The notes beneath the pieces were generated by a model. The model saw nothing but the letters and a program-made list of their open reading frames with translations, ran no database searches and was not told the origin of the DNA. DNA of 64,000 nt from Callorhinchus milii (Eukaryota), in assembly GCF_018977255.1 (NCBI RefSeq), contig NW_024704755.1:15252001-15316000 (forward strand), given 5' to 3'. The position numbers and the translations under genes are program-made. Positions 909 to 64,000 of the stretch are shown here, piece by piece (the first letter of the stretch is position 1; every line of letters begins with the position of its first letter).

Positions 909-1063
909 CAGTCAAACCAATCTTCATCAAACACCCAGGGGCCTAAATATAAGGGTTTCTTCTGAATTAGGGTTCATTGTTGAGTGAACCGGGTTGTTCC
1001 AGGGCAGTTGTTAACTGGGGGTGTTTGCTGAATGGAGGTGGTTGCTTGAACAGGTTTGATTTA
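909..1063. mobile_element. Decayed Tc1/pogo-type MITE (duplicate ~58734-58888)
   Basis: TA|CAGTCAAACC start and imperfect GGTTTGATTTA end, with internal inverted similarity. Confidence 0.4.
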
Positions 1064-2300: not shown

Positions 2301-3477
2301 TTATCCAACTAGGACGACCCTACTCAGTAGGGCTTTGACTTGCTGAGTTAACAGGAACTAAGTGGAAGAATCCCTTCTCCCAGGAGGAATATTCTCGACC
2401 AAATGAATACGGGAAAAGAATGCCTGGTCCAGTGTATTCACAAAGAGGTTGACTGGATGCATTAATGCTCTTTGTGGGTTTGAACTGGAAAGAGGCATAC
2501 ACAAAAATAGATCATATATTAGTAATAATCATAACGATATAGTACCTTTTCACATCCTTGAGATGTCTCAAAACACTTCACAGAATATATTGTAAAGTGA
2601 ATTCACTGTATTTCTGTACAAAAAGCGACAGCCAATTGCAGACAGCAGTTTCCCACAAACCTTCATGGATTTAGTGAGCAATTTTCTATCTATCCATAGA
2701 AAGGTAAGTCTCAACCTTCTATTCCAGTTGTTTTCCTATGTACATTCACACACAAAATGAATAAATATTAGAGATACGTTGCAATAATGTGTTGATAGAG
2801 CCATAGAAAGATATGATTTATTTTTTTAATGACATGCTAGTATGTAGGTTGCAGAATCAAACAGGGACCAAATGTTGCTTCGCATTTACCATCTCTGAAT
2901 ACGTGTTGGTCCAAACGTGAAAAACAATGTCAGTGATGTTAGTGTCTGTCACACACCAACTATATTAAGGTGCCTGGGGACCAATATGAAACCTGCTCCT
3001 TGCTCTAATCGCAGTGAATCGTTTCCTTAACTGAAGTGGTATCTGAGATACTCTATCAATCAGTTCCAGTGTATAATCATGTAACCATAATCCAAGTAAT
3101 GACCACTGGCTGTATTTGTTTATCTTGCTGAATACTTTGGGTGCTGTCACCCATCCTATGACTTTCATCTATCTTTAGATTTGGAGGATTCAACCTCCCC
3201 TCGGATTTCAGTGAAGACGGTTCACAGTGGGAGGGAGATTTATCCAAAGCTGTTTCAATCGCTGGGTAGGTTTTGGAGGCCAGGGCATTATAGTCCACTT
3301 GTGTTCAAATACTAAACCCCAATGAACAACAATGCACACCGATTAATACATATTTAATGATAAACCACGGAACTGGAGGAGAAAAACTATAATCTTCAGA
3401 TGCCACGGAGTTGACAGCACAGCCCCGTCAGCGGCAGCATGATTGGGGATTTACAAAGATTTACAAAGGGGACAAAA

Positions 3478-3710
3478 ACAGAAGTCGCTGGGAACACTCA
3501 GCAGGTCAGGCAGCATCTATAGAGAAAAGAAAGTGAGTCCTGTGAGTCAACGTTTCGGGTCCACGATCCTTTGTCAGAATCCTTTGTCAGACCCGAATCA
3601 TTGACTCTCTTTCCCCTCTCCAAAGATGCTGCCTGACCTGCTGAGTGTCCCCAGCGACTTCTGTTGCAGTTTCAGATTTCCGGCATCTGCAGTATTTTGT
3701 GTTTTGTTGA
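3478..3710. mobile_element. Palindromic Penelope-type terminal repeat element (duplicate 61299-61530)
   Basis: 41-nt inverted arms 3478-3518 and 3624-3664 with one mismatch; central CTGACAA..CGAAAC on the minus strand. Confidence 0.6.
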
Positions 3711-4922
3711 CAAAAGGGACATTGGATTGTGGAGAACATTCACCATTTGTGTCATTGAATTGGAGTCCCTTGAGATCAGCCTTGGGAAGTTATGTGCAAC
3801 ATACTCCACAAATCAATTTTGATAACATTTTAGGCAATTGTCCATAATAAGCAATACCACAGCGATCCTGCTTAAGTATTCAAGAGTTGACACAGTGAGT
3901 AGATACATAAGCACGTCGCTTATAAACGTTTTAAGATGGAACGATGCAGTGTAAAATATAGAAACAGATGAAAAAATGAAATGAGACACACAGGCTTTAC
4001 TGATGGCCAATAATAGGCTTTGTGGTGTGAGATTGTATCTGTGGTACACATATGTATATTTAGATATGTACGCTTACTTGTGAAATTGCTACAACATCCA
4101 CCGCTCGCACCATCAGCTGATGTGTTACATGAATTACCGGTGAAGGGAGATAATCGTGTTCTTCATTTATTGCCTTTACAGCAGAGAAATGGGTAAAAAA
4201 AGATTGTTGCCTCATTTTAACTGGAGTTTTTCCACATACTGCATAACGCCCACACAATAACCTTTTCATTGTGGCGGATCAATTGCATCGCATTTTCTTA
4301 GAATGTTTTTAAGGTAATTTATATCACTTTACTTCTAATTTGAGACTCTGTACATTACTGTCATCAGATGAGGTAACATAATATAAGTGAAACAAAACAT
4401 TACCCTCACAGCACACACTGAGCTGCTGAATATTTACTTGGCGCTGTGTGTAATGCAGAGGACCTGGTATTCAATCTATCAGATTCAGCCATGAAGGAGC
4501 CACCCTGAGCAGAGGCTTGCTAACTTTTAAATGTGACCGACTGAGAAATGGTTTTAGAATTGATCATGAAATCTACATACAAATGTTGTGGGTATTCAAC
4601 CGGATATTTGTTGTTGAAATTGGCTCCACGGTCAATGGAATGATGATAGCAGGAATCAACTAAAGGGGCAGCTCTTCGGCCAATCATTCAATTAGTGACT
4701 AATACATAAAATGTTTGGATTTCCCAGAGAGAGAGAGAAACATTACTGAACGTTAAAGAATCATCATAATCTATGTCTGAAGCCCAGCAGTAAGTACTTG
4801 GTTAAGCTCCATCTGAAACAACGCTTAAGAATTCCATTTTATAGTTATTTAATTTTATCCGATTCTATCGAAGATATAGATTGAACAAATCAATCCCAAC
4901 ACATTACGTTTCATAACTTTTG

Positions 4923-4928
4923 TTTATT
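4923..4928 (-). terminator. Candidate poly(A) signal AATAAA of A1
   Basis: AATAAA on the minus strand about 345 nt past the stop codon; use not demonstrated. Confidence 0.35.
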
Positions 4929-5271
4929 GAAAGTCGACAAAACCGCTTCACAGTCTTACAAACTATTAGAAACTGGTTCTAGATTTGTATTGGTATATTT
5001 TGTTCCAGTGATACAATAGCTTCTTAGCTTTTATAAACTATTATAGTTTATAGCTCAGCGACATTATCAGATTAGTATTATACAAATTTGAAGTTGAAAT
5101 TGCATTGACTTGATAAATGATAGGTAATACAAACTAATCAAACATTATGTCTTCCTGCAGTGTCAGAGCAGTGACACAATAACACACCACATTGATGTAC
5201 ACACTGTAACTAGTCTACATTAGAAGGGAACTGTGAGGAATCTGCATCGATAATTGTCTATTATTGTGACA

Positions 5272-5436
5272 TTATGCGGTTCCTGACTCCATGAAAGTGC
5301 CATCTTCGTAGTTTCTGGTCTTTACCTCGGAATACTCTGAATTCTTGTCGCTGTGTTTAGCTTTTCCTGTATTTTTGGAGCGAGGCAAATCCAGAGCAGC
5401 GTATGTCAGCTTGTTAGCGGCTGCTCCTCGCTTGGT
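5272..5436 (-). CDS. A1 terminal coding exon with ITIMs LTYAAL and SEYSEV
   Basis: ttgtttttgcag acceptor, 54 codons then TAA; paralogous to the preceding exon. Confidence 0.8.
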   Translation of the reverse strand, partial: TKRGAAANKLTYAALDLPRSKNTGKAKHSDKNSEYSEVKTRNYEDGTFMESGTA

Positions 5437-8400
5437 CTGCAAAAACAATGTTTGGTTTGTCTTTGTTACACAGAGAGATGTACATAGAATGGTACAGGAA
5501 CTGACCATCCGGTGTTTATACTTCACACGAGCTCCATCCCTTCCTATTTGCTCCTATAACTCTCTTATCTCTTCCCCTCATGTATGCAACACGTTTTAGG
5601 TTACATTATTCCAAACGCTTCACCCCATGGACGATTGGTAAATGTATTGCAAACTGCGATATGTAGCTGCAGATTTAAGGGTTTTAGATCTCAACGATGA
5701 GCTGACAACTGCTTTCATGGGTTGGCGAAGATCAGTTAGTGCTGCAATTCCTGATTGCTCTGTGGGACATTGACATCTCAGGACGTCTGGATTGTAATAT
5801 CTCTGATCCTCGTTAATTTATTTGCTGAATTGTTGACTCATTTATAAAGATAAAATCTAAGGACTATATAGCTCAGAAGACCAGACGGCCCATCGTACAC
5901 GTGCTGTATGTTTGAAAGAATTATCTATTGATTCCCATTTACCCGCCTTTTCGCCAACACTCCCTAAAATTGATCCGTTTTACATATCTTCATTATCTTT
6001 AGATAAATAAATGATATTGGTTGAATCCTGGAAAGCTGAAAATGTTCCACAACTAAATGCAGCATCGAAAACGAGGTAGAAGATTGGAGGAGGGGACAAA
6101 ATAATAACGATGAAAGTCAATGAACCCAATTTACCAAACCTGTCCAATACAAGGTTTCTCCATGCTGTGTACCTGGGCGTATACTGTCCTGTCTTCCTGA
6201 TGTTTAGTTCTTGGAGTTTTATTGGAACTTCTCAAATCCAATGTTACATAAGCCACGTTGTCACCCGCTGCTGCCTCCCCCGCCTGTAAAACAAAGTTAC
6301 GTGGTTGTTCCGTTGCCTTTCTTGGTCTGTCATCTTTGACCATGGAATTGAATAAGTGGAGGATTTAGGGGAAATAAACTGCTGTCAAGTTGAAATAGTT
6401 AAAGACATATCTTCATTAAGAAGATCGAGTTCTGTCTGGAGGCAGTGAAATTCATTTTTGCAACTGATGTTTTGCAATCTATGCCCGTGAAAATATGTTG
6501 CATATCTGATTAGATGGATCAAACAAGAATTATCACTTAAAATATTATCACTTAAAACATGCTTGGACTCCTCGTGTTCCAAGTCATATGGCTGACTCTG
6601 AAGGATTACTAGAAAATTAAATTACTGTCAGCAAACTTTATTTATTTATTTATTTATTTAAGTAACAGCTTAATCCTGAAAAGGGAAATAAATAGGTCTG
6701 TAATTCTGAAGGAATGATGTTAAGGTGGGAAACTTTCAGTTCACAGTCCAAGTGAACATGAGCTCTACCTTGTTGGAGGTTGGTTGTCAAACCAAGTTCC
6801 TGTATTCTTGTTAAGTTTACTTTAAAGATCATTTGAGAATCTTCTAACACAGAATGAGGTTTGTCCGGTGTCCTCGCGAATGGTAATCATGATAAATTGG
6901 CGAAACACTTCATGACAGTTTATCGGACCATATTGTGTGTAAGTTGGTTCGACCAAATAGAGTCGCTACAAAGACAACGATTGTTCATGAAGCATTTTAA
7001 GATGTTTGGAATGATACCGGCCACAATGATAATCACTGAATTGGTCCATTGGTCACCCAAATAATTTGGTGATAGACTTACCTGATCTTCAGGATTGCCC
7101 AATTGAGTCAGGTTTCCCTTTGATCCTAAATATAAATTAAATTTACTGAATGAAATATTTACTCAGTTTCAATATTAACACTAGAATAATATTATTGCTC
7201 TACATTTCAGGATGAGTGAAATAGAAATATTCGCCTGCACCCTTTTCCTTCTCTCTGAATCTCCCCTTCACTCATACTTTCCGAAATCCTCAAAACAGTG
7301 GAACTCTTTCCCTTGAACATTTTAAATTTCAAACTTGGCAACGCCTATCCACTATTCCTTAATCATTTTCATTTCTCCTCTTGGCCGAGGCCACTCACCT
7401 GGGACTCTCCATAATAAAAACATATTTTTTATGTCACAATTTCAATATAATATTTAACTGAATTCTATTGCTGATGTACATCTGCTGTGAGTCCCTGCAT
7501 TTATTTGATGCCATTCATCACTAGAGTTTCTTACAAATGCATGTAATTCATCGTATTTGAAGCCGATTGCAATAGGTTAGAGCAGATTTCAGACACTGGA
7601 TGTTGTAAAATGAGAAATTCTGGGATACTAAAGTTCACCATGTGAAATGATTACAGTCCCTAATCTGTTGCAATAACTACCAGTAATTGGCATTGTATAA
7701 CCGTAGCTTCTACCTTCGAATTTGAAGTAACAATCAAGACACTTTTTTCCATTTGCTAACCCAGTGGTGCTTTCTAAAGTTTTGTATCAATGTGTAATAT
7801 TTACAATTAATTGCAATGAAATCAGAATTTTCTTACCGTTTTTCTTTTTTAATTGGCATCGCTTCCCAAATATGATCACAAGCGCCAGAAATGCGAAACC
7901 ACCCGCTGCACATCCAGCCCACAATAAATAATGGGTTACCTTGCTACTACCTAGAGAAACTGTGAAAAGTGAGGTGAAGCATTGTGCAGCGCATCAATTT
8001 GGACTTCCACTCATCGCAGTAGAATACAAATGTTATGCATATCATTAATGAATTATATTCGCAGTGATTCAAACTGAGTATTAAGCCCAATAAGTTGTTT
8101 AAATATTATGACTAATCTTAATCTGTGCATTTATTGAAATAAGAAAAAAAATGACAGGAGCATCACCGAAAAGAGTTTGATATTTTGTAGTATAATTAAT
8201 GACATCTGATCGCGCGTATTTTTATTAATGCTCTTGATTTTATTACACAGGCGAGGTGACACCAAAACGTACCACTGATTTTCACAGGAATCCCCACAAA
8301 GTACAAACCATAAATTGTAGTTTAAGACGGCTGTACCCAGTGACATCTCATCACAAGCAATGAAACGTGCTCACTTGTTATTAATAAAACGAGGGAACAT

Positions 8401-10975
8401 TATGGAATAGAATTACATTTTGTGATCAAATGCCTTGTGTTAAAAAGAATTTGAAAATTAAGCAGTTTTAGGATGCTTCCATGTATATAATATCTGTTAG
8501 GTTTAGCAAAACCTTCACATCAAAAGATACAATATATTTTATGACCATCATCCACAACTCCCTCATCACCATTCTTAACACATTGGTCTCTCATCATATC
8601 AGCCATCGCTTCCTATCCCCTCAGGTTCCCCAGGACAACAGTCACACTCCATCCCTCAAGTCACAGTTTCTTGCTGCTGAACATTGGATGTTCCTCATGG
8701 CTCTATCCTCGGTCCTCTGCTCTTCACTATCTATATGCTCCCACTTGGCGACATCACTGTAGACATGTATTGCATATTCACATGTACAGTGATGAAACCC
8801 AACTCTCCCATCTTCCTCCACACTCGACCTCCAACTTCGACCCGATTGCTGTCAGACATCAAGTGATTGATCAGCTCTGACTTTCTTCAGCTGAATAATA
8901 ATAAAAATCCATGCATTTTATACTTCGACTTATATATCGAATGCAAGGATTAATATTATTATTATCTCGTTATTGTTGTCTCAAATCACTTCAGATGATT
9001 TACTTTATGAATCAATGCAACAAAGCATTCCTCTGAAAATTCAATTAATAACAGTTGACTTTTTAAAAATCTTTTAGCATCTTACCTTTAGATTTTGGGA
9101 AAGCGAAGGTGGCAAAAGCTGAAGTCTTGAGGCTGACGTGAGACACCAGACAGGTATAAACAGACCCATTCTGGCCAGGCTGTGTGTCTTCGATAGAGCT
9201 CGAGGCCTTCCAGAGATCCTCTGAGTTCTGCTTCTCAGTGGAACCTGACTCTTCCAGCTTTATTTCTGGTGTTGGCACAATTTTGGTGCCATCTTTATAC
9301 CAAGTGAGGGTGATTTCCTTTGGGTGAAACAAGGCAGTTTCACACACAAGAGTCTGAGGCTTAGGTGAATTTCTAGAGAAAATCTTCAGTGGAGTTGGGG
9401 GAGCTGTGGAACAGATAATGGAGGAGAATCGTGTTAATTTTGATCAACCGATGGGACAAACTTTATTTTGATTTATATCCGATACATTTCTTTGCAAACT
9501 CCTGACGCCTGAGTACAAATAGAGGTTTTCTAAGATACACAAATATCCCTTCTCACAGCAGCGTTGGCCTTACTCCTGCTTTAATTACTTTGTGCTTTTA
9601 TCAATTAATATTTTAAATTAATATTTATGGTTAAGTTTGTAATACATTGGAATTCATTTGGGAGTTTTGATATACCTACTCACTTTCCCTCAACTTACAG
9701 AGCTCAGAAACCATCCACATAAGGTGATATCACTGGTATATTTCCTTTATAATTTACTGCAGAAATATTCAAGATCTGAAACCATTTATAAATCAAAATC
9801 TGAATTTAATTTTGCTTCCACACTCCACACGCCTAATAATAATCCCTCAAGAAACAAAACAACAATAAATTGGTCACTTGAATCCACGACTGTTTGTGGG
9901 ACACTACTGTGCGCAATTGGCTGCCGCATTTTACCCACAAATACACAGTCAATTCACTTTACAGTATATTCTGTGAAGTGCTTTGAGACGTCGGGAAGAC
10001 GTGAAAAGCGCTATATCAAATGCAAGAATTATTATTATTATTATATTCATGTCCTTTATCTTTCATATTATTACTAACTTTGATGATTGGCAGGTAGAAA
10101 TGATCACTTAGAAATGCCTAACCAACATGTTGAAGCGTCGAACAGAGGTGATAGAGGATTCCTGGCAGAGGTGTGCACACTGTGTTAGTGTGGATCAGTT
10201 GGTTGTATTTTCACCTCTGCGTTAGAATTTTGCTCTGCTGACCACTGCTGAATGATGGTGATAAAATAATCATTGCATTTGAATATAGCGCCTTATCACA
10301 TCTTCGAGACAGCTCAAAGTACTTTAAAAGCCAGATTGTGAAAGTTATTAATGGACAAACGGTATAAATAACGATATAGCATTCACCGCATTTATTACTT
10401 GTTATGTAATTTCTAAACACCAATTTTGCTCTTCATTCACACTCACCGCGCACAGTTAATTGTGATCCAGGTCCTGTTCCAATTATTGATCCCTGACGGA
10501 CCACTAGACAGCGATAGACTCCAGAGTCCTGTAAACTCACATTCAGGAACTGGCAGAAGCCGCTTCCTTTAGTTTTTACACCAAATAGTTTCCTGCGATC
10601 CTCCTTTGTATCCAAATAGCCGCTCTCACCCTCCTTATGCCACTGCACCTTCACTCCTGAACCATCTTGAGGGAAGCGAAAGATACAGTGGAAGGTGACA
10701 TTTGTCCCTCTGATGACAGCCACATGGTCGGGGATTTGAGTCACTTTCAACGATGAATCGCCAGCAACTGTCAGAAAATAAAGTCAGAGTTCTTAGATGG
10801 TAAGCTATGGAGAAAACAAATGGGTAAAAGAGGAATAAATGTAACTATTTAAGATAAATGGCACACGGAAACAATTTGCACATGTTTCATAGAAGAACTG
10901 AATTATAGAATGAACATACACACCTGTTGAAATAATATATAAGGCAGACAGGCACAGAAAGACCACATTCCTCAT
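5272..10975 (-). CDS. Gene A1: complete VJ-C1 IgSF inhibitory receptor (SIRP/NCR3-like), 7 exons, 385 aa
   Basis: Exons 10975-10924 (leader), 10767-10447 (V), 9403-9086 (C1), 7950-7837 (TM), 7125-7082, 6283-6140, 5436-5272 all have AG/GT ends. Phases are compatible (1,1,1,1,0,0) and total 1158 nt with no internal stop. The small cytoplasmic exon and the 6140 donor are inferred. Confidence 0.85.
6140..6283 (-). CDS. A1 cytoplasmic exon with ITIM VAYVTL and ITSM TVYAQV
   Basis: tttgttttacag acceptor; phase-0 donor CAG|GTTTGG. An alternative donor lies at 6173, and read-through stops at 6131-6133. Confidence 0.78.
7082..7125 (-). CDS. A1 short cytoplasmic exon (SKGNLTQLGNPEDQ)
   Basis: atttag acceptor and CAG|GTAAGT donor; 44 nt converts phase 1 to phase 0, as the next exon requires. 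Confidence 0.7.
7837..7950 (-). CDS. A1 transmembrane exon (SSKVTHYLLWAGCAAGGFAFLALVIIFGKRCQLKKKN)
   Basis: About 22 uncharged residues followed by a basic stop-transfer; acceptor tttctctag, donor GTAAGA; 114 nt, phase 1-1. Confidence 0.88.
8540..8910 (+). mobile_element. L2 RT fragment in the post-C1 intron (paralogs ~21590-21960, 22560-22925, 36220-36570, 37180-37540, 50870-51220)
   Basis: VPHGSILGPLLFTIYMLPLGDI is an L2 RT motif. Confidence 0.75.
9086..9403 (-). CDS. A1 C1-set Ig domain exon
   Basis: LVC..FHPKEITLTWYKDG..YTCLVSHVSL are C1 hallmarks; 318 nt, phase 1-1, donor GTAAGA. Confidence 0.93.
9810..10045 (+). mobile_element. 5'-truncated SINE in the A1 V-C1 intron
   Basis: Family body plus (TAT)n tail; absent from the A2-A4 introns. 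Further partial copies at ~2520, 16500-16690, 20620-20920, 35210-35530, 49860-50190, 57260-57380. Confidence 0.8.
10447..10767 (-). CDS. A1 V-set Ig domain exon with germline-joined J-like strand
   Basis: LKVTQ..TFHC..VQW..QDSGVYRC..GPGSQLTV; acceptor ttttctgacag, donor GTGAGT; 321 nt. Confidence 0.93.
10924..10975 (-). CDS. A1 leader exon MRNVVFLCLSALYIIST
   Basis: ATG, hydrophobic core, 52 nt, phase-1 donor ACAG|GTGTGT; homologous exons precede A2-A4. Confidence 0.85.
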
Positions 10976-13019: not shown

Positions 13020-14460
13020 TCTACGCTTGTACAGCACCTTTCACGTCTGTAGGATGTCCCAAGGCATTGGATAGTCCGTGTATTGGACCCAAGCTGGGGT
13101 CGTGATTGGGGAGTGTGTAGGGCAGGGGTATGGAAGCAGGGTGATTGAAAGCATGGTTGTTAAGAAGGGTCTTGAGATGGGTGTTGAAGGAGGCAAGGGA
13201 CAGGGGGTGAGGTGGAGGTACTGTGGGATGGAGCACCAGAGGGTAGTGGCTGAGTGGCGGAAGGCCCGCCCGCCAATGGTTGTGGGCAAGGTGGAGAACG
13301 TGAAGCAGGCTGGAGCCCCTAAGCGGAGGAATCGGGCAGGATTGTAGGGTTTTAGGGAGTCACAGAGGTAGGGGCGGACATGGAGGGCTTTGAAGGTGAA
13401 CTCCAGGATCCCGAATGATGGGAAGCCAGTGGAGTTGGGCGACAATGGGGGTGATAGGGTCACGGAGCCTGGTGCGAGAGAGGACATGAACTGCAGAGTT
13501 CTGGATGATCTGCAGCCTATGGAGGGAGGATTGGGGAGGTTGAGTAGCAAGGAGTTTGCATAGTCAAACCTCGGTGTTATGAATGCATGTAAGAGGGTTT
13601 CGGCGTCCTGTGATGTGAGACAGTGGTGGAGCCGGGCGATACTGCAGAGGTGGGAGAAAGCAGAGTGGGTTGTGGTATGGATGTGGGATAGAAAGGATAG
13701 TTGAGGGTCAAAGAAGACGTCAAGGTTCTGGACTGGCTTAGTACGATGCAGTGTGCATCAATGGATGATGATGCTGTCAGCAGCTGAGGTGTGGAGGCAC
13801 TGAATGGAGCCTTCAGGAGGGTTTTAGTCTTGTTGATATTCAACTGAAGAAAGTTAGCTCTCATCCAGGACCGGAGTGTGACAGACATTCTGTTAGGACA
13901 GCAGTGGTCCTGGAGTCAAGGGCGGATGCAGAGACGTTCAGTAGCAAGCCATCTGCATCCATGGCAGTTGACCCCATGTCTGTGGATGATTTCACCAAGA
14001 GGGAGCATATAGATGTTGAAGTGGAGAAAGGACAGAACTCTAAGGAACGTCGCAAGAGATGGTGCAGAACTAGAGGAGAAACCGTTGGTGAGATGAAGTG
14101 TAGGTGGTGTGAGAGGTATGATCTGAACCATTCAAGGAAAGAACCATGAAGGTTGAGGTGAGAAGACAGGTGGTGGATGAGGATAGAATGGTCAACGGTG
14201 TCGATGGCAGCAGTGAGGTCAAGAAGGACAAGGAAGCAGAGTGAACCCTGTTCCCAGATGGACAGAATGTCATTTGTCACTTTGACCAGGGTTGTTTGTG
14301 TGCTGTGGGTATCACGGAAACCGGATTGGATGTGTTCATGAAGGGAATGGCGGGATGAGAGCTAACTTTCTTTAGTTGAACATCAACAAGACTGAGGCTC
14401 TCCTGATTGGCTCCTGTCAGCACTTCCACACCTCAGGTGCTGACAGCATCACCATCCATG
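13020..14460 (-). mobile_element. Decayed L2 LINE, RT region through 3' end
   Basis: LVLLDLTAAIDTVDHSIL, YMLPLGEII and WMRANFLQLNINKTK lie in broken frames. Confidence 0.87.
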
Positions 14461-22096: not shown

Positions 22097-22182
22097 TCAA
22101 TTCACAATAGTTGACTTTTTAACTGCGAACCCACCCGCTGCACATCCAGCCCACAATAAATATCGAGTTACACTTTTACTGT
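22097..22182 (-). CDS. A2 half-TM terminal exon
   Basis: Intact acceptor gtttctccag; homologous to the A1 TM exon up to GGFA, then intron-derived sequence and TGA. Confidence 0.55.
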
Positions 22183-24562
22183 CTGGAGAAACAGTGCAAA
22201 CTGAGGTGAAACATTGTGCAGCACAACGATTTATAGTTCCAGTCATTGCAGTAGAAAATAAATGTTATGCATATCAGTTATGAATTATATTTTCCCCACA
22301 AAATACAAACCATAAATTGTAGAGCAAGACGGCGGTACCCAGTGACACCTCATCACAAGCAATGAAACGTGCTCACTTGTTATTAATAAAACGAGGGAAC
22401 ATTGTGGAATAGAATTGCATTTTGTGATCAAACGCCTTGTGTTAAAAAGGGTTTGAAAATTAGACCGCTTTATGATGCTATATTATGTTAAGTTATTATA
22501 CGTATATAATATGCGTTAGGTTTAGCAAAACCTTCACACCAAAAGATACAATATATTTTATGACCATCATCCACAACTCCCTCATCACCATTCTTAACAC
22601 ATTGGTCTCTCATCATATCAGCCATCGCTTCCTATCCCCTCAGGTTCCCCAGGACAACAGTCACACTCCATCGCTCAAGTCACAGTTTCTTGCTCCTGAA
22701 CATTGGATGTTCCTCATGGCTCTATCCTCGGTCCTCTGCTCTTCACTATCTATATGCTCCCACTTGGCGACATCACTGTAGACATGTATTGCATATTCAC
22801 ATGTACAATGATGAAACCCAACTCTCCCATCTTCCTCCACACTCGACCTCCAACTTCGACCCGATTGCTGTCAGACATCAAGTGATTGATCAGCTCTGAC
22901 TTTCTTCAGCTGAATAATAATAATAATCCATGCATTTTATACTTCGACTTATATATCGAATGCAAGGATTAATATTATTATTATCTCGTTATTGTTGTCT
23001 CAAATCGCTTCAGATGATTTACTTGATGAATCAATGCAACAAAGCATCCCTCTGAAAATTCAATTAATAACAGTTGACTTTTTAAAAATCTTTTAGCATC
23101 TTACCTTTAGATTTTGGGAAAGCGAAGGTGGCAATAGCTGAAGTCTTGAGGCTGACGTGAGACACCAGACAGGTATAAACAGACCCATTCTGGCCAGACT
23201 GTGTGACTTCAATAGAGCTCGAGGCCTTATAGAGATCCTCTGAGTTCTGCTTCTCAGTGGAACCTGACTCTTCCAGCTTTATTTCTGGTGTTGGCACAAT
23301 TTCGGTGCCATCTTTATACCAAGTGAAGGTGATTTCCTTTGGGTGAAACAAAGCAGTTTCACACACAAGAGTCTGAGGCTTAGGTGAATTCCTAGAGAAA
23401 ATCTTCAGTGGAGTTGGGGGAACTGCAGAAAAGATAATGGAGGAGAATCGTATTCATTTTGATCAATCAGCAGGAGAAACTTTATTTTAATTTGTATCCA
23501 ATACATTTCTTTGCAAACTCCTGATTCCTGAGTACAATTGGAGGTTTGTTTAGATACACAAATATCCCTCTCACAGCAGCATCGCCTTGCTCCTGCTTTA
23601 ACTACATTGTGGCTTTGTCAAGTAATATTTATTCATAATCTTTATCTTGCATATTATTACTAACTTTGATGATTGGCAGGTGCAAATGATCACTTAAAAA
23701 TGTCTGTTCAATAGGTTGAACCCGCGAACAATAGAGGATTCCTGGCAGAGGTGTGCACACTGTGTTAGTGTGGCTCAGTTGGTTGTACTTTCGGCTCTGA
23801 GATAGAATTTCGCTTCTGCTGACCGCTGCCGAACGGTGGTGATAAAATAATCATTGCATTTGAAAATAGCACCTTATCACATCTTCGAGATGTCTCAAAG
23901 CACTTTAAAAACTAGATTGTGAAAGTTATAATGTACAAACAATATAAATAACGATATAGCATTCACCGCATTTATTACTTTTCATGTAATTTCTAAATGC
24001 CAATTTCGCTCTTCATTCACACTCACCGCACACAGTTAATCGCGATCCAGATCCTGTTCCGATTATTGATCCCTGACGGACCACTACACAGCGATAGACT
24101 CCAGAGTCCTGTGAAATCACATTCAAGAACTGGAAGAAGCTGCTTCCTTTAGTTTTTACACCAAATAGTTTCCTGTTATCCTCCTTTGTATCCAAATAGC
24201 CACTCTCACCCTTCTTATTCCACTGCACCTCCACTTCTGAACCGTCTTGAGAGAAGGGGAAGATACAGCGGAAGGTAACATTTGTTCCTCTGATGGCAGC
24301 CACATGGTCGGGGATTTGAGTCACTTTCACGGAAGAATCGCCATCAACTGTCAGAAAATAAAGTCAAACACTGACTTCTCAGGTGGTGAGCCATTGAGAA
24401 AACAAATGAGTAAAAGAGGAATAAACGTAAGTATGTAAGATAAATGTCACATGGAAACAAGTTTGCAAGTATTTCATAGAATAACCGAACTATAGAATGA
24501 ACATATATACCTGTTGAAATAATGTGTAAGGCAGACAGGTACAGGAAGACAACACTCCCCAT
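22097..24562 (-). CDS. Gene A2: leader-V-C1 with truncated TM exon, predicted 258 aa, probably soluble
   Basis: Exons 24562-24511, 24347-24027, 23422-23105 are intact. The remnant exon 22182-22097 reads DSKSVTRYLLWAGCAAGGFAVKKSTIVN-stop. Confidence 0.72.
23105..23422 (-). CDS. A2 C1-set exon
   Basis: Open, 318 nt, canonical splice sites. Confidence 0.92.
24027..24347 (-). CDS. A2 V-set exon
   Basis: Both Cys, the Trp, DSGVYRC and GSGSRLTV are present; 321 nt, open. Confidence 0.92.
24511..24562 (-). CDS. A2 leader exon MGSVVFLYLSALHIIST
   Basis: 52 nt, donor ACAG|GTATAT. Confidence 0.85.
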
Positions 24563-36714: not shown

Positions 36715-36800
36715 TCAATTCACAATAGTTGACTTTTTAACTGCGAACCCACCCGCTGCACATCCAGCCCACAATAAATATCGAGTTACATTTTTACTGT
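36715..36800 (-). CDS. A3 half-TM terminal exon
   Basis: DSKNVTRYLLWAGCAAGGFAVKKSTIVN-stop; same breakpoint as A2. Confidence 0.55.
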
Positions 36801-39177
36801 CTGGAGAAACAGTGCAAACTGAGGTGAAACATTGTGCAGCACAACGATTTATAGTTCCAGTCATTGCAGTAGAAAATAAATGTTATGCATATCAGTTATG
36901 AATTATATTTTCCCCACAAAATACAAACCATAAATTGTAAAGCAAGACGGCGGTACCCAGTGACACCTCATCACAAGCAATGAAACGTGCTCACTTGTTA
37001 TTAATAAAACGAGGGAACATTGTGGAATAGAATTGCATTTTGTGATCAAACGCCTTGTGTTAAAAAGGGTTTGAAAATTAGACCGCTTTATGATGCTATA
37101 TTATGTTAAGTTATTATACGTATATAATATGCGTTAGGTTTAGCAAAACCTTCACACCAAAAGATACAATGTATTTTATGACCATCATCCACAACTCCCT
37201 CACCACCATTCTCAACACATTGGTCTCCCATCATATCAGCCATCGCTTCCTATCCCCTCAGGTTCCCCAGGACAACAGTCACACTCCATCCCTCAAGCCA
37301 CAGGTAGGTGCTGCTGAACATTGGATGTTCCTCCTGGCTCTATCCTCGGTCCTCTGCTCTTCACTATCTATCCCACTTGGCGACATCACTGTAGACATGT
37401 ATTGCATGTTCACATGTACAGTGATGAAACCCAACTCTCCCATCTTCCTCCACACTCGACCTCCAACTTCGACCCGATTGCTGTCAGACATCAAGTGATG
37501 AGATCCGACGTTCTTCCGCTGAACATTAATAATAATCCATGCATTTTATACTGCGACTGATATATCGAATGCAAGGATTAATATTATTATTATTATCACA
37601 TAATTGTTGTCTCAAATTGCTTCAGACAATTTACTTAATGAATCAATGCAACTGAACATCCCTATGAAAATTCAATTAACAACAGTTGACTTTTTAATAA
37701 TCTTTTAGCATCTTACCTGCTTTAGATTTTGGGAAAGCGAAGGTGGCAATAGCTGAAGTCTTGAGGCTGATGTGAGACACCAGACAGGTATAAACAGATC
37801 CATTCTGGCCAGACTGTGTGACTTTGATAGAGCTCGAGGCCTTATAGAGATCCTCTGAGTTCTGCTTCTCAGTGGAACCTGACTCTTCCAGCTTTATTTC
37901 TGGTGTTGGCACAATTTCGGTGCCATCTTTATACCAAGTGAAGGTGATTTCCTTTGGGTGAAACAAAGCAGTTTCACACACAAGAGTCTGAGGCTTAGGT
38001 GAATTCCTAGAGAAAATCTTCAGTGGAGTTGGGGGAACTGCAGAAAAGATAATGGAGGAGAATCGTATTCATTTTGATCAATCAGCAGGAGAAACTTTAT
38101 TTTAATTTGTATCCAATACATTTCTTTGCAAACTCCTGATTCCTGAGTACAATTGGAGGTTTGTTTAGATACACAAATATCCCTCTCACAGCAGCATCGC
38201 CTTGCTCCTGCTTTAACTACATTGTGGCTTTGTCAAGTAATATTTATTCATAATCTTTATCTTGCATATTATTACTAACTTTGATGATTGGCAGGTGCAA
38301 ATGATCACTTAAAAATGTCTGTTCAATAGGTTGAACCCGCGAACAATAGAGGATTCCTGGCAGAGGTGTGCACACTGTGTTAGTGTGGCTCAGTTGGTTG
38401 TACTTTCGGCTCTGAGATAGAATTTCGCTTCTGCTGACCGCTGCCGAACGGTGGTGATAAAATAATCATTGCATTTGAAAATAGCACCTTATCACATCTT
38501 CGAGATGTCTCAAAGCACTTTAAAAACTAGATTGTGAAAGTTATAATGTACAAACAATATAAATAACGATATAGCATTCACCGCATTTATTACTTTTCAT
38601 GTAATTTCTAAATGCCAATTTCGCTCTTCATTCACACTCACCGCACACAGTTAATCGCGATCCAGATCCTGTTCCGATTATTGATCCCTGACGGACCACT
38701 ACACAGCGATAGACTCCAGAGTCCTGTGAAATCACATTCAAGAACTGGAAGAAGCTGCTTCCTTTAGTTTTTACACCAAATAGTTTCCTGTTATCCTCCT
38801 TTGTATCCAAATAGCCACTCTCACCCTTCTTATTCCACTGCACCTCCACTTCTGAACCGTCTTGAGAGAAGGGGAAGATACAGCGGAAGGTAACATTTGT
38901 TCCTCTGATGGCAGCCACATGGTCGGGGATTTGAGTCACTTTCACGGAAGAATCGCCATCAACTGTCAGAAAATAAAGTCAAACACTGACTTCTCAGGTG
39001 GTGAGCCATTGAGAAAACAAATGAGTAAAAGAGGAATAAACGTAAGTATGTAAGATAAATGTCACATGGAAACAAGTTTGCAAGTATTTCATAGAATAAC
39101 CGAACTATAGAATGAACATATATACCTGTTGAAATAATGTGTAAGGCAGACAGGTACAGGAAGACAACACTCCCCAT
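36715..39177 (-). CDS. Gene A3: leader-V-C1 with truncated TM exon, predicted 259 aa, probably soluble
   Basis: Exons 39177-39126, 38962-38642, 38037-37717, 36800-36715. V protein is identical to A2; C1 differs (IKV, SHI, extra Ala). Confidence 0.72.
37717..38037 (-). CDS. A3 C1-set exon
   Basis: Open, 321 nt, ends PKSKA-G, donor GTAAGA. Confidence 0.92.
38642..38962 (-). CDS. A3 V-set exon
   Basis: Same translation as the A2 V exon; canonical splice sites. Confidence 0.92.
39126..39177 (-). CDS. A3 leader exon
   Basis: Same sequence as the A2 leader. Confidence 0.85.
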
Positions 39178-51380: not shown

Positions 51381-52873
51381 TTAAAAATCTTTCAGTACCT
51401 TACCTGCTTTAGGTTTTGGGATTGTGTACATGGTGATAGCTGAAGTCTTGAGGCTGACGCGAGAAACTTGACAGGTGTAAACAGACTCTATCTGTGCATC
51501 TTCAATAGAGCTCGAGGCCTTATAGAGATCCTCTGAGTTCTGCTTCTCACTGGAACCTCTCTTTTCCAGCTTTATTTCTGTTGTTGGCGCAATTTTGGTG
51601 CCATCTTTATACCAAGTGAAGGTGATTTCCCTTGGGTGAAACAAGGCAGTTTCACAAAAAAGAGACTGAGACATAGATGAATTCCTAGAGAAAATCTTCA
51701 GTGGAGTTGGGGGAACTGCAGAACAGATAATGGAGAAGAATCGTATTAATTTTGGTCAATGGGCAGGACAAACCTGATTTTGACTTTATTTTGATTTGTA
51801 TCTGACACATTTCGTTGCAAACTCCTGAATTCTGAGTGCAAATGGAGGTTTGTTTACATACACAAATATCCCTTTCACAGCAGCATTGGCCTTCCTCCTG
51901 CTTTAAATACATTGTGGTTTTATCAAGTAATATTTATTCATAGCCTTTATCTTGCATTTCATTACTAACTTTGATGATTGGCAGGTGGAAATGATCACTA
52001 AGAAATGCCTATTCAATATGTTGAACTGTCAAACAGAGGAGATAGAGGATTCCTGGCAGAGGTGTGCACACTGTGTTAGTGTAGCTCAGTTAATTGTATT
52101 CTGGCCTTTGTGTTAGAATTTCTCTTCTACTGACCGCTGCCGAACGATGGTGATAAAATAATCATTGCATTTGAATGTAATGCCTTACCACGTTTTGGAG
52201 ATGTCTCAAATCATTCTAAAAACTGGAATGCAAAAGTTATTAATGAACAAACAATACAAATGACAATATAGCATTCACCACTTTTATTAATTTTATGCAG
52301 TTTCTAAATGCCAATTTCGCTCTTCATTCAAACTCACTGCACACAGTTAATCGTGATCCAGATCCTCTTCCAATTATTGATCCCTGACGGACCACTACAC
52401 AGCGATAGACTCCAGAGTCCTGTAAACTCACATTCAGGAACTGGAAGAAGCCGCTTCCTTTAGTTTTTACACCAAATAGTTTCCTGTGATCCTCCTTTGT
52501 ATCCAAATAGCTGCTCTCACCCTCCTTATCCCACTGCACCTTCACTCCTGAACTACCTTGAGGGAAGGGAAAGTTACAGTGGAAGGTAACGTTTGTCCCT
52601 CTGATGGCAGCCACATGGTCGGGGATTTGAGTCACTTTCACCGAAGAATCGCCATCAACTGTCAGAAAATAAAGTCAAACACTAATTTCTCAGATGATGA
52701 GCCAGTGAGAAAACAAATGAGTAAAAGAGGAGAAAACGTAAACGTATAAGTTAAATGTCACATGGAAACAAGTTTGCACATATTTCATAGAAGAACTGAA
52801 TTATAGAATGAACATATATACCTGTTGAAATAATATGTAAGGCCGACAGGTACAGGAAGACAACACTCCCCAT
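51381..52873 (-). CDS. Gene A4: leader-V-C1 with no local TM exon (235 aa if C1 reads through)
   Basis: Exons 52873-52822, 52658-52338, 51715-51404 are open with canonical sites. Read-through gives GKVLKDF-stop at 51381. No A-type TM exon was seen downstream before A3. Confidence 0.7.
51404..51715 (-). CDS. A4 C1-set exon
   Basis: Open, 312 nt; both Cys and the Trp retained, SH changed to SR, in-frame 9-nt deletion. Confidence 0.88.
52338..52658 (-). CDS. A4 V-set exon
   Basis: TFHC..VQWDKE..DSGVYRC..GSGSRLTV; 321 nt. Confidence 0.92.
52822..52873 (-). CDS. A4 leader exon
   Basis: MGSVVFLYLSALHIIST, donor GTATAT. Confidence 0.85.
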
Positions 52874-54849: not shown

Positions 54850-57800
54850 TTACATGAATATATTGTTCAATATTGTTACAGACACCTGTTCCTCCAGGAT
54901 AACAGTTATATTCCATCCCTCAAATCACAGGAAGATGCTGCCGAACATTGGATGTTCATCAGGGCTCTATTCTCGGGCTTCTGTTCTTCACTATCTATGT
55001 GCTCTCACTTGGCGACATCAACTTAAAACGTCGACATGTATAATGATGAAACCGACCACTTATAGCGCCTTGTGACTTCCTTCTGCCGTGAAAAGTGCTA
55101 TACAAATGTAATTTGTTTTTGTTGTTGTTCTATTTATCAATTGAGAATAACTACCATTTTAGTAATTCTGAGGGAAAAGCAAAAGATTGCAGTTTAGGGT
55201 TGTGGTAAAGGAATATCATCAGACTGGGAAAATGTTACCAGTGGAGTTCCACAAGGTACTGTTTTGGGACCTATTTTGTTTAATATTTGTAAAAATAGTC
55301 TGCAATTGGATTCGCAAGTTCAGTGGCTATATTTACAGACAAAACCAAGGTAATGAAGGTGGTAGATTGTGAAGATGAATAAGGTAGGTCACAGGAGGTT
55401 TTGAACATTCTTGGCAATTGGGTGGATCGGTGGCAGATGAACTTCAATGTGGAGACATGTAAAGTACTTCACAGATGGACAAAAAATCTGTAAGGGAAAT
55501 GGAAAGGACCTGGGGTTCCTGATTGACAGTACCTTGAAGCTCTCCCAACAATACTCAGTGGCATTGAGTGAAGCAAACCAGTTGTTGATATGTATGAAAA
55601 GGTCAATATGAAGTGGAAATCCTGCCACTGTATAAATCAGTGGTGAGATCATACTTAGCGTACTGTGTACAGCTCGGGTCACCGCAGTACAAAAAAGATA
55701 TTAGAGAAATCGAGAAGAGACAGAAGAGGGCAACAAAAATGATTGAGCGAATGGAGGGACTTGACTATGAGGAGTGACTAAGTAAATTGTACATGTTCAT
55801 GCTGGGTAAGAGAAGATTGAGAGGTGATATGATTGGTGTCTTTAACAGTCTAAAGGGGAAGACAATATAGATCAGGACAGGCTGTGGAACAGGCTCCCTT
55901 GGGAGACTGTTGAAGCAGGAAATGTTGATCCTTTCAAACACAGATTAGATAGTTTTCTTTTTTTTCTTTAACATTATGGGACATCGCATATATGTAGTTC
56001 AGGACATATGTGCATGCGATCACCAGGAAGGTGGAAGGCGAACCAGATGGACCTTGGTCTTTTTCCATCTAGCATCTTTTATTTTCTTATATACAATGGT
56101 AGCAATGAATCTACGCGTCAAACCAAGTTGTTTATCGGATGAGGAGATTTATTTTGAATCCAATGCGGGGGAAGAGGGATAGGAGGAATGCGATTTCTAA
56201 TATGAATCATCATAATTTGAATTTATTAAATTAGTTTAAATTAATCCCACAGAATATGCACATTGGGCAGATTGCTTTCTTTGTAATTGTTTACCTGTTG
56301 CAGTGTTAGCACTCTGGCCTCTGAGTCACAACATTGTGGGTTCAAGCTCCAGGTTGCTTGAGAATCTCAACCAAGCTGAGATTTCCATTCTTCCTACCAA
56401 CACACGGAAATCCCTGAGATTGATTGTTGGAGTGGAATGTGCACTCTCAGAGTATGCATTGGGTTAAATGCTGAATTCTAATCAACTAAAACCACATAAC
56501 TTGCCATTGATATTGCTGTCTGGCCAGCTTTCTCGCTGCTCTTCCATCTAAGATGACATTCTATTGCCAGGAATATCACCTTGGAGTCAGTTCAGCTCTA
56601 AGGATACCCTGTTTAGAAGGTGTTGCATTGTTAGAGTTGGCATTCTTCAGATGAGATGTTAAACCAAGTTTCCATCTGCCTGTTCATTTGGCTGCTGAAG
56701 ATTAGTGGCATATTTGAAAAGAGAATGGAGTTTCTCTCAGTGTCCTGACCATCTTCCAATGGCAATGCAACACACCACTTAGTGAGGTCTCCTTGGAGCT
56801 GAACTGGCCTCAATATGACATGCCTGGCAGTGGAATGTCGGAATCGTGTCCGCCCTCGGTGGAAGCCTCGTTAGTCCGGTTCTTGATCCAGGCGGGTTCT
56901 CAGTATTCCAGGCCACTGCTCACCCCAGTATTGCACTGAATTGAGCCTAGGCTGTTAGCCCAAAGGTTCAATAGACATCTATACTTAGAGAAATAAAACA
57001 ATCATACCTTGTTTAGCATCAGATACAGGGTAAATCGCGATATTGGAGTCTTGAGGCATATGTGAGATACCAGACAGGTGTAAACAGCCCTACTCCAGAC
57101 AGGTTGTATCTCTTCCAAGGAGCTTGAAGCATTATAAACTCTCCCATCTCTCCCAAGTTGCTTGCTTGTATTGACAAACAAATCATTTTTATCATCTTTA
57201 TACCAAGTGGCAATGATATCCTCTGGGTAAACACTGCTGTGCTGCCTCATTTCACTCACAAAGTATGCAGTCAATTCACTTGACAGTATATTCTGTGAAG
57301 CAGTTTCAGACGTCTCAAAGATGAGATTAGGCAATATACCAAATGCAAAGATTATTATTATTATTAAATATTATTATTATTATTTAGGGAATTTCATTTA
57401 CATTAACACTAAAAGATATAGTGCAATAATAAATGCAGATTGGCTGCAAATACTTATGATATTTAATTTATGCTGCGGTATTGAAAAAAAGTAGGATTGA
57501 AGACCCCTGTCATCTGGTTATTTAAGTTGAGATATATGTGGAAGAATAGGAGCCGTCACTTACTTACCATGGATAAGTGGTTATGATCCAGTTCCATTTG
57601 TAATTTCTCTTCTTCGATATGTCACTGCACAGTAATAGGCTCCTGAGTCCTGGAGGTTGACACTAAGGAACTGCAAGAAAGCTTTCCCACTCTGGGTAAG
57701 GTATCATTTCCTGCTGTCTGAGCCCGGCTGGAGAAATTCATTCTCGCCCAGTTTCCACCATTCAACAGTCACACCAGAATTATCAGAAGGGGATAAAAAG

Positions 57801-58020
57801 TATCTGAAGGTAACATTGGCAGCTACGATCACAGTAGAGCTTTCAGGGGTTCGGTCACTGTGAGGTGAGCAATGGTAACAACTGTCAAAGATGAATACAA
57901 TCCTTATGTTAAGTGTATGTAACAAAAATATAGAAAATATGGATTGAGAAAACAATATCAAATACCTGTGCGAATGGTGAGAATTACAAGCTACAGAAAC
58001 ACAATATGTTTCAAAATCAT
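54850..58020 (-). pseudogene. B-type VJ-C1 receptor pseudogene (leader 58020-57966, V 57881-57568, C1 ~57240-57008, TM fragment ~54890-54850)
   Basis: Leader has an in-frame TAG. V has a 1-nt frameshift after LTVTEP, first Cys->Tyr, and TGA and TAA stops, but keeps QDSGAYYC..GTGS. The C1 5' end is replaced by a SINE but keeps YPEDIIATWYKD..YTCLVSH. Confidence 0.85.
55170..55960 (+). mobile_element. CR1 LINE RT and 3' fragment
   Basis: Decayed [14 protein letters not shown] and LYKSVVRSYLAYCVQ..KRATKMI motifs. Confidence 0.78.
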
Positions 58021-63095: not shown

Positions 63096-64000
63096 TTATG
63101 CGGTTCCTGACTCCATGAAAGTGCCATCTTCGTAGTTTCTGGTCTTTACCTCGGAATACTCTGAATTCTTGTCGCTGTGTTTAGCTTTTCCTGTATTTTT
63201 GGAGCGAGGCAAATCCAGAGCAGCGTATGTCAGCTTGTTAGCGGCTGCTCCTTGCTTGGTCTGCAAAAACAATGTTTGGTTTGTCTTTGTTTGTCTTTGT
63301 TACACAGAGAGATGTACATAGAATGGTACAGGAACTGACCATCCGGTGTTTATACTTCACACGAGCTCCATCCCTTCCTATTTGCTCCTATAACTCTCTT
63401 ATCTCTTCCCCTCATGTATGCAACACGTTTTAGGTTACATTATTCCAAACGCTTCACCCCATGGACGATTGGTAAATGTATTGCAAACTGCGATATGTAG
63501 CTGCAGATTTAAGGGTTTTAGATCTCAACGATGAGCTGACAACTGCTTTCATGGGTTGGCGAAGATCAGTTAGTGCTGCAATTCCTGATTGCTCTGTGGG
63601 ACATTGACATCTCAGGACGTCTGGATTGTAATATCTCTGATCCTCGTTAATTTATTTGCTGAATTGTTGACTCATTTATAAAGATAAAATCTAAGGACTA
63701 TATAGCTCAGAAGACCAGACGGCCCATCGTACACGTGCTGTATGTTTGAAAGAATTATCTATTGATTCCCATTTACCCGCCTTTTCGCCAACACTCCCTA
63801 AAATTGATCCGTTTTACATATCTTCATTATCTTTAGATAAATAAATGATATTGGTTGAATCCTGGAAAGCTGAAAATGTTCCACAACTAAATGCAGCATC
63901 GAAAACGAGGTAGAAGATTGGAGGAGGGGACAAAATCATAACGATGAAAGTCAATGAACCCAATTTACCAAACCTGTCCAATACAAGATTTCTCCATGCT
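63096..64000 (-). CDS. 3' end of a second A1 copy (terminal ITIM exon 63260-63096; partial penultimate exon 64000-63974)
   Basis: Near-identical to 5272-6166; R->Q and P->S substitutions; runs off the window edge. Confidence 0.78.

Follow-up and report, generated by a model that had tools for sequence, protein, structure and literature searches.

Does a cartilaginous fish encode a germline-joined relative of the antigen-receptor chains that carries its own signalling tail? This question is raised by a stretch of 64,000 nucleotides from Callorhinchus milii (NCBI RefSeq assembly GCF_018977255.1, contig NW_024704755.1, positions 15,252,001 to 15,316,000 of the forward strand), which is called the window here. 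On its minus strand lies a gene with variable (V), joining (J)-like, and C1-set segments, named gene 1 in this study. Cartilaginous fish are the oldest living lineage with immunoglobulins (Ig), T-cell receptors (TCR), as well as a major histocompatibility complex (MHC). C1-set domains occur almost solely in proteins of adaptive immunity. A kinship of SIRP with the precursor of antigen receptors has long been considered possible (PMC2785349). I found that gene 1 is probably an intact member of a non-rearranging VJ-C1 family whose nearest characterised relative is SIRP-alpha, and its sequence and structure model predict an inhibitory receptor.

As listed in Table 1, seven exons of gene 1 can be joined in frame from position 10975 to position 5272. 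They give a coding sequence of 1134 nucleotides and a product of 377 residues without an internal stop. All introns are of the GT...AG type, and the Ig exons are in phase 1. The product is a type I membrane protein with a split leader, according to both the sequence and the predicted structure. A split leader is a feature of antigen-receptor-type genes. Pfam assigned residues 30-123 to a V-set domain (E 7e-8) and residues 138-215 to a C1-set domain (E 5.7e-9), both above the curated cut-offs. AlphaFold2, run with a 65-sequence alignment, predicted two confident beta-sandwich domains, mostly with a predicted local distance difference test (pLDDT) score above 90, followed by a transmembrane (TM) helix (residues 235-270) and by a tail that is disordered.

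The V exon encodes the Cys45-Cys104 pair, N-glycosylation sequons at N39 and N93, and an extra cysteine, Cys88. It is closed by a J-like strand (...IIGTGPGSQLTVR, the same stretch also being given as ...YRCLVVRQGSIIGTGPGSQLTVR) with no intervening intron. No heptamer (CACAGTG or CACTGTG) of a recombination signal sequence (RSS) was found between positions 10300 and 10900 around the V exon. Since there is neither a V/J intron nor an RSS heptamer, V and J are germline-joined in gene 1. The sequence criteria for a C1-set domain are (F/Y)(F/Y/H)P at the BC loop, 13 residues from the B-strand Cys to the C-strand Trp, and xVxH after the F-strand Cys (Hatherley et al. 2009, PMC2785349). The C1 domain of gene 1 has all three hallmarks: FHP at the BC loop, 13 residues in C145-ETALFHPKEITLT-W159, and LVSH after C209. 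The TM segment (HYLLWAGCAAGGFAFLALVIIFG) contains no charged residue. An earlier reading of the DNA letters, hereafter the sequence-only reading, had placed the gene at 5272-10975 and had claimed a non-rearranging V plus J-like strand in one exon, a true C1-set exon, and an uncharged TM segment. The two ends of that interval coincide exactly with the stop codon and the ATG of gene 1, and the single exon without an RSS heptamer, the three hallmarks together with the Pfam C1-set match, and the charge-free TM segment bear out the rest.

Two details of the ectodomain were also seen. Cys88 is presumably unpaired and is replaced by Phe in the paralogues. The C1 domain has a 7-residue insertion (…PTPEIKLEESGS…, residues ~170-185) that is present in three neighbouring copies of the window (g2 to g4) and missing from the elasmobranch members and the more distant C. 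milii paralogues. This insertion is the sole low-confidence stretch of the predicted ectodomain, with the pLDDT dipping at residues 179-184.

What does the tail encode? It carries five tyrosines: Y298, Y321, Y335, Y358, and Y366. Three of the five, Y298 (VAYVTL), Y335 (LTYAAL), and Y358 (SEYSEV), fit the consensus of the immunoreceptor tyrosine-based inhibitory motif (ITIM). Y366 (RNYEDG) fits no motif, and Y321 (TVYAQT) is the best-conserved tail motif of the family to which gene 1 belongs. Exons 6 and 7 are each an internal repeat of the other. When the tail alone was compared with SIRP-alpha by BLASTP (E 2e-5), all four SIRP-alpha tyrosines were aligned colinearly, in the order hYAxLxL, xxYAxxQ, LTYAxLDL, and sEYxxV. 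They form two pairs of similar spacing, with 23 and 23 residues within the pairs in gene 1 versus 24 and 25 in SIRP-alpha. A profile of the family tails scored 48.5 bits on a bat SIRP-alpha tail versus a maximum of 14.9 bits in 1000 shuffles, and in 50 family tails no position is more conserved than the four tyrosines. The TM segment and the tail of the gene 1 family are very probably homologous to those of SIRP-alpha, as judged from these alignments. The four-tyrosine tail of the sequence-only reading thus stands in that four tyrosines align one-to-one with SIRP-alpha, although five are present and only three are canonical ITIMs. For the proposed inhibitory receptor, the ITIMs are indeed there, and inhibitory signalling is a prediction from these motifs.

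The ectodomain was compared with known structures and proteins. In a sequence search of the PDB, the top match was SIRP-alpha (2wng, 4.8e-11), followed by IgM C domains, B7-H6, and TAPBPR. A Foldseek search of the predicted structure against the PDB returned only V-C1 chains (TCR-beta, Ig light chains, and SIRP-alpha). The best rigid superposition was with SIRP-alpha 2wng (TM-score 0.40/0.48, root-mean-square deviation 4.6 Å over 219 columns), whereas the deviation was 9-13 Å for Fab light chains and TCR-beta. A HMMER search of the gene 1 product against 1.84 billion cluster representatives gave SIRPs as the best non-chondrichthyan matches covering C1, TM, and tail. Among them, bat SIRP-alpha (E 2e-16) was aligned over these three parts, the alignment of a rhinoceros SIRP-alpha isoform with V and one C1 extended over query residues 15-362, and a SIRP-alpha-like protein of the lungfish was also found. 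Like gene 1, SIRP-alpha has an N-terminal V domain with a germline J-like strand directly before a C1-set domain, as well as an uncharged TM segment; the GTGPGSQLTV strand of gene 1 aligns to SGAGTELSV or SGPGTQLTV of SIRP-alpha. On the other hand, SIRP-alpha has two C1 domains versus the single C1 exon of gene 1 and of its family. The second tyrosine motif of the family, TVYAQT, is another difference, being neither an ITIM nor an immunoreceptor tyrosine-based switch motif (ITSM).

The gene 1 protein looks built to work like SIRP-alpha. If the sequence is read in this way, the V domain would bind a cell-surface ligand, for which a CD47-like self marker is the obvious candidate. Y298, Y335, and Y358 of the ITIMs, and probably also Y321, would become phosphorylated by Src-family kinases. 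Each tyrosine pair might then dock the tandem Src homology 2 (SH2) domains of SHP-1 or SHP-2. Recruitment of these phosphatases would damp the activation of the leukocyte carrying the receptor, probably a myeloid or natural killer (NK)-like cell. These steps are drawn from established ITIM biology and from SIRP-alpha (PMC12975943). As a speculation, the invariant RTVYAQTKQ motif of the family, lacking the hydrophobic +3 residue, may recruit a different SH2 protein.

Is gene 1 alone? It is not: paralogues and fragments of genes surround it in a tandem array, and it is a member of a large family. The closest database proteins to its product are all from C. milii, in agreement with the cartilaginous-fish origin that had been supposed. 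The HMMER search yielded 523 matches at E <= 1e-3, of which 61 reached E <= 1e-30. The gene 1 product is matched by paralogues and by homologues from sharks or rays at E 1e-94 to 1e-30, so gene 1 is far beyond chance. Among the matches named, the C1 signature of the family was found only in chimaeras, sharks, and rays (Callorhinchus, Heptranchias, Heterodontus, Scyliorhinus, Carcharodon, Cetorhinus, Chiloscyllium, Hemiscyllium, Mustelus, Mobula, Hypanus, Hemitrygon, Amblyraja, Leucoraja, and Narcine). A profile search with the family alignment in a 5.8-billion protein collection also gave only chondrichthyan proteins among the matches listed. The predicted gene 1 protein is a member of a multigene VJ-C1 receptor family found across Chondrichthyes.

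The consensus layout of the family is that of gene 1: a V domain with a conserved GNGTGSxLxV strand, one C1 domain starting with PPTPLKI, a TM segment with a GCAGGGL motif, and a tail of the form v.YAaLdl ... RTVYAQTKQg ... KLTYAaLdL ... tEYAev. Full models with leader, V, C1, TM, and tail exist in many paralogues and in shark homologues. Some elasmobranch members, in contrast to the ITIM-tailed ones, have an Arg within the TM segment and a tail of 8-40 residues without an ITIM. They are P0185/P0186 and P0025 of Heptranchias, P0045 of Hypanus, P0049 of Hemitrygon, P0081 of Heterodontus, and P0105 of Chiloscyllium, and the Arg is often followed by ...IIVDH. In Heptranchias, P0185 (Arg in the TM segment, 8-residue tail) and the ITIM-tailed P0019 share 86% identity across 228 aligned N-terminal residues, which comprise the leader and the ectodomain, before they diverge completely. 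Such near-identical ectodomains, joined to an ITIM tail in one member and to a charged TM segment in another, are the signature of paired activating and inhibitory receptors. Thus, the Arg-containing short-tail members are putative activating partners, and the family would be a paired-receptor system in which the elasmobranch Arg forms signal through an adaptor with an ITAM (immunoreceptor tyrosine-based activation motif). The SIRP family likewise has activating twins with a charged TM segment, although SIRP-beta uses Lys where the chondrichthyan family uses Arg.

Is the family orthologous to SIRP? In the domain-only PDB searches, the whole-sequence E-values were dominated by multi-Ig proteins (titin, Robo, and IgM); therefore, per-domain bit scores were used, with human reference domains. 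The C1 profile of the family matches the C1 domains of Ig, SIRP, MHC, TCR, and beta-2-microglobulin. It scored 47.7 bits on Ig lambda C, 44 on the lungfish SIRP-like protein, 41 on SIRP d3, 38 on Ig kappa C, 36 on HLA alpha-3, and 34 on SIRP d2, and such scores do not discriminate the SIRP, Ig lambda, MHC, and TCR C1 domains. The V profile scored 28.6 bits on NKp30, 21.6-24.8 on SIRP V domains, and ~19.6 on light-chain V domains. The C1 tree recovers the family as a separate clade (93/99) on a long stem, which joins all other sequences in a polytomy, and a joint clade of the family and the SIRP C1 domains was not rejected by the approximately unbiased (AU) test (p-AU 0.39). In the V+C1 tree, d1-d2 of the tetrapod SIRPs falls together with Ig light chains and reptile V-C1 genes, whereas the chondrichthyan family groups with a coelacanth V-C1 gene and the long branch of B7-H6.

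Several observations weigh against the reading of gene 1 as an intact SIRP-like inhibitory receptor. Forcing the family and the SIRPs together in the V+C1 tree was 15.8 log-likelihood units worse, a marginal rejection (p-AU 0.028) for a joint group that was named after the tree was seen. Ig lambda C scores slightly higher than SIRP d3 with the C1 profile, and NKp30 slightly higher than the SIRP V domains with the V profile. At Y321, the +3 residue is not hydrophobic as it would be in an ITIM or ITSM. C. milii, including the window, yielded no member with a charged TM segment. The exact 377-residue product is absent from the searched protein collection, the model being built from the genomic sequence alone. 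Lastly, the RefSeq model of the locus, P0001, omits the leader and TM exons of gene 1 and fuses the gene to the neighbouring copy g2.

The SIRP-like receptor with V and one C1 of the sequence-only reading is therefore partly upheld: SIRP-alpha is the nearest characterised protein in the PDB, in the library of cluster representatives, and in the tail, but SIRP orthology is not established by the trees. The V and C1 phylogenies to which it had pointed recover the family as its own clade, whose position they do not fix. For the same reason, the relevance to antigen-receptor origins suggested there is not shown. Orthology of the gene 1 family to SIRP is undecided. It is conceivable, though rather doubtful, that the family and the tetrapod SIRPs come from one gene of the jawed-vertebrate ancestor that already had a VJ-C1 ectodomain and a four-tyrosine tail, the single C1 being ancestral.

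The trees and the PDB search also bear on a different identity. Gene 1 might be a B7-H6-like (NCR3LG1-type) V-C1 ligand on target cells. B7-H6 is the other non-antigen-receptor protein with a V + C1-set layout, its PDB match to the ectodomain is about equal to that of SIRP-alpha (2e-9; 39.9 bits, one stretch), it lies on the chondrichthyan side of the main split of the V+C1 tree, and NCBI names several family members NCR3LG1-like. However, that position is held by a very long branch with weak support (91/48). The aligned J-like strand of B7-H6 is KAQGTVQLEV, without a GxG, versus GNGTGSxLxV in the family. B7-H6 is a ligand with an unrelated tail, whereas the TM segment and tail of the family are colinear with SIRP-alpha and its Arg-bearing activating twins are a receptor trait. 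A B7-H6-type identity is thus improbable.

The V profile and the linkage of the family concern NKp30 (NCR3). NKp30 lacks a C1 domain, carries an Arg in its TM segment, and ends in a short tail without an ITIM, and it is linked to the MHC. It is listed among the non-rearranging genes of the MHC-6 lineage (PMC10751288). Could gene 1 be a cartilaginous-fish NKp30 orthologue with an added C1 exon? Both have a non-rearranging VJ-type V domain with a common GxGNGT/GNGTGS-type J strand, the single-domain V score of NKp30 is the highest obtained, and a C1-skipping isoform of the family, P0018, is automatically named 'NCR3-like' by NCBI. However, the gap in V score is small, and gene 1 differs by its C1 exon, its uncharged TM segment, and its ITIM tail. 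The linkage differs too. A white shark family gene lies at 104.55 Mb on CM029971.1 (193.5 Mb), and a catshark family gene at 91.8 Mb on LR744038.1 (198.8 Mb). The MHC is on chr19 of the white shark, where its last gene ends at 115.6 Mb, and on chr13 of the catshark, where its last gene ends at 163.4 Mb (PMC10751288 supplement). Since the MHC chromosomes are of ~116 and ~163 Mb and the family chromosomes are of 193.5 and 198.8 Mb, the family is not MHC-linked in either shark. The sequence-only reading had named synteny to MHC paralogons as a check; in these two species the family lies outside the MHC chromosome itself. An NKp30 orthologue is very unlikely. No informative neighbour gene was found within the 10-kb flanks of P0177, P0001, P0096, P0183, P0178, and P0130, nor any non-family neighbour in the 10-kb flanks around four family genes.

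UrIg and UrIg2 are recently described non-rearranging VJ-C1 genes of sharks (PMC12227049). They share with gene 1 the cartilaginous-fish host, the non-rearranging single-exon VJ, the split leader, and true C1 domains. Gene 1 might accordingly be a member or a fragment of this group, or an Ig light-chain or TCR-type gene. The C1 profile is best on Ig lambda C and gives 29-33 bits on each UrIg2 C domain. Ig light chains and TCR chains have the same two-domain V-C1 fold and are top Foldseek matches, and some relatives of gene 1 are named 'immunoglobulin lambda-1 light chain-like' by NCBI. In contrast to Ig and TCR genes, gene 1 has no V/J split, no RSS, and no rearrangement, and it has its own TM segment and predicted signalling tail. 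UrIg2 has nine C1-type domains in the nurse shark and eleven in an epaulette shark model (PMC12227049), versus the single C1 followed by an ITIM tail in gene 1. Linkage is to the MHC for UrIg and to the antigen-receptor complex for UrIg2; the latter forms disulfide-linked dimers, both are expressed in liver and gill, and an ITIM is nowhere mentioned in that paper (PMC12227049). The family has no MHC linkage in the two sharks, and the C1 tree separates the family from the Ig, TCR, and UrIg2 domains. An identity of this kind is hardly credible.

Similar, uncharacterised V-C1 genes exist in bony vertebrates. The coelacanth P0143, turtle P0130/P0116, and Rhineura P0138 proteins have the same VJ-type V, one C1, and a TM segment. 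The C1 of coelacanth P0143 is the highest-scoring non-chondrichthyan C1 with the family profile (53 bits) and, in the V+C1 tree, sits on the side of the chondrichthyan family; the reptile genes are instead grouped with SIRP and Ig light chains. Unlike gene 1, these genes have a Lys in the TM segment (N-x-x-K motif) and short tails, indicating an activating type. Their automatic names are 'tapasin-related-like' and 'SIRP-like'. For gene 1, a tapasin or TAPBPR identity was rejected, since it exists in the automatic name only: there is no tapasin N-terminal domain, and Pfam shows Ig-superfamily domains only. A homologue search from coelacanth P0143 at E <= 1e-6 returned the query only, this threshold being too strict for the size of the database. 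The turtle V-C1 gene (locus L005) adjoins a seven-transmembrane receptor gene.

Is gene 1 an independent functional gene? It might be an unexpressed recent duplicate, or its 3′ exons might serve read-through transcripts from g2, g3, and g4. In these three upstream copies the leader, V, and C1 exons are intact, whereas usable exons for a TM segment or a tail are missing. P0001 (MU249845.1:15,257,272-15,276,562) spans 19,291 bp from the start codon of g2 (24562) to the stop codon of gene 1 (5272) and joins V and C1 of g2 to half of the gene 1 V domain, half of its C1 domain, and its three cytoplasmic exons. In addition, the array is young and repetitive, with duplications that are 99.1-99.6% identical, and the V exons of paralogues give a dN/dS of 0.5-1.6, with too few substitutions in the V and C1 exons to call selection. 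However, P0001 drops half a V and half a C1 domain and has no TM segment, and for this reason it resembles a prediction artefact; it is almost certainly a mis-predicted chimera. Gene 1 has its own ATG and leader, intact splice sites, no stops, and all structural Cys and Trp residues, and the full-length models in paralogues and sharks also speak for a complete gene. P0001 and a second RefSeq model, P0002, share the junctions of exons 4-5-6-7 with the gene 1 model. A non-functional or read-through role for gene 1 is therefore unlikely. Gene 1, so far as its sequence tells, is a real and intact gene for a SIRP-like predicted inhibitory receptor. Similar fusions of tandem copies were apparent in P0061 (catshark) and P0035 (thorny skate).

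The sequence-only reading had regarded the gene as belonging to a poorly described lineage. No published account of a chondrichthyan SIRP-like V-C1 family was found in the full-text literature, although a mention in subscription papers or in the elephant-shark genome supplement is possible. RefSeq, however, already has the genes under automatic "SIRP-alpha-like" names. The other automatic names in the family are SIRP-beta-1-like, tapasin-related-like, Ig lambda-1-like, CD276 homolog, NCR3LG1-like, NCR3-like, MHC class I-like, class II-like, and FcRn-like. Such inconsistency is expected of a family without a characterised orthologue. The misleading names should be unified, and the RefSeq model at the gene 1 locus is chimeric. 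The SIRP-like kind of paired Ig receptor is well known, and the chondrichthyan family is uncharacterised; what is notable is its single C1 and its own ectodomain clade.

Thus, chimaeras, sharks, and rays carry a large, rapidly duplicating, non-rearranging VJ-C1 family with a SIRP-alpha-type tail, with activating twins in elasmobranchs. If the homology of the tails reflects common descent, the age of a SIRP-type inhibitory checkpoint would be close to that of jawed vertebrates. If the common SIRP ancestry is also true, the family would represent a living signalling relative, without rearrangement, of the V-C1 unit that built the Ig and TCR chains, and the SIRP-type paired checkpoint would date to the gnathostome base, outside the MHC. 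The family is a tractable system for asking what such receptors originally recognised.

Table 1. Exons of gene 1, paralogous copies, and repeated elements in the window
Feature	Position	Strand	Description
Gene 1 exon 1, leader	10975-10924	minus	ATG and most of the signal peptide (MRNVVFLCLSALYIIST); phase-1 donor GTGTGT; AlphaFold helix at residues 2-18
Gene 1 exon 2, V+J	10767-10447	minus	Leader end, V-set domain, and germline-joined J-like G strand GTGPGSQLTV
Gene 1 exon 3, C1-set	9403-9086	minus	Cys145-Cys209, FHP, 13-residue Cys-Trp spacing, CLVSH
Gene 1 exon 4, stalk/TM	7959-7837	minus	Short stalk, uncharged TM helix, basic juxtamembrane KRCQLKKKNG; AlphaFold helix 235-270
Gene 1 exon 5, cytoplasmic spacer	7125-7082	minus	SKGNLTQLGNPEDQ; same junctions in RefSeq models P0001 and P0002
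Gene 1 exon 6	6283-6173	minus	Y298 VAYVTL (ITIM), Y321 TVYAQ|T (conserved, non-canonical)
Gene 1 exon 7	5436-5272	minus	Y335 LTYAAL (ITIM), Y358 SEYSEV (ITIM), Y366 RNYEDG, TAA stop
g2	22121..24562	minus	Leader 24562-24511, V 24347-24027, and C1 23422-23105 intact; TM exon remnant 22200-22121 with acceptor AG changed to TG and truncated mid-helix
g3	36739..39177	minus	Near-copy of g2 with identical V exon (at 38962) and the same broken TM exon
g4	51407..52873	minus	Leader, V (at 52658), and C1 intact; C1 exon 9 nt shorter
g5	57047..57847	minus	Divergent V-C1 pseudogene; B-strand Cys lost in both domains; V exon with stop and frameshift
Last cytoplasmic exon of a further gene-1-like copy	63097..63261	minus	Upstream exons past the window end
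Higher-order repeat	1-6166 and 57826-64000		99.6% identity over 6.2 kb, cut by the window end
Direct repeat	19788-35005 and 34379-49611		99.1% identity over 15.2 kb
Degenerate half-V exons	15235-15342, 26790-26969, 41405-41584		Between tandem copies
Frameshifted C1 fragments	20118-20343, 34748-34919, 49353-49525		
Retroelement open reading frames	1601-2297, 13041-14280, 53978-54465, 59440-60120		LINE reverse-transcriptase fragments and proline/serine-rich tails

All Ig exons of the window are on the minus strand, and gene 1 is the only complete inhibitory copy there. No cytoplasmic exon was found for g2, g3, or g4 in the window, and for g4 no TM exon either downstream. g2 and g3 lie in the 15.2-kb duplication of the direct repeat, whose 14.6-kb unit is nested in a higher-order repeat of 57.8 kb defined by the match between the two ends of the window. 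Such near-identical large repeats could be very recent segmental duplications or an assembly duplication. More family genes were found at 15.55 and 15.64 Mb of the same scaffold (MU249845.1), so the cluster spans at least 400 kb.

The copies g2 to g4 may have become pseudogenes, may encode secreted V-C1 forms, or may supply 5′ cassettes to read-through transcripts. Their V domains end in LTVC, which places an extra Cys at the V/C1 junction. If the donor of the C1 exon is left unused, the frame stops after 6-7 more codons and would yield a secreted V-C1 protein. g5 is ~44% identical to gene 1 and is a pseudogene of a second lineage of the family. The half-V exons and C1 fragments derive from another family member and occur once per repeat unit. 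The rest of the window outside the Ig array is debris of long and short interspersed nuclear elements (LINE/SINE), and the remnant retroelement open reading frames account for the GC-skew peaks in the composition profile of the window.

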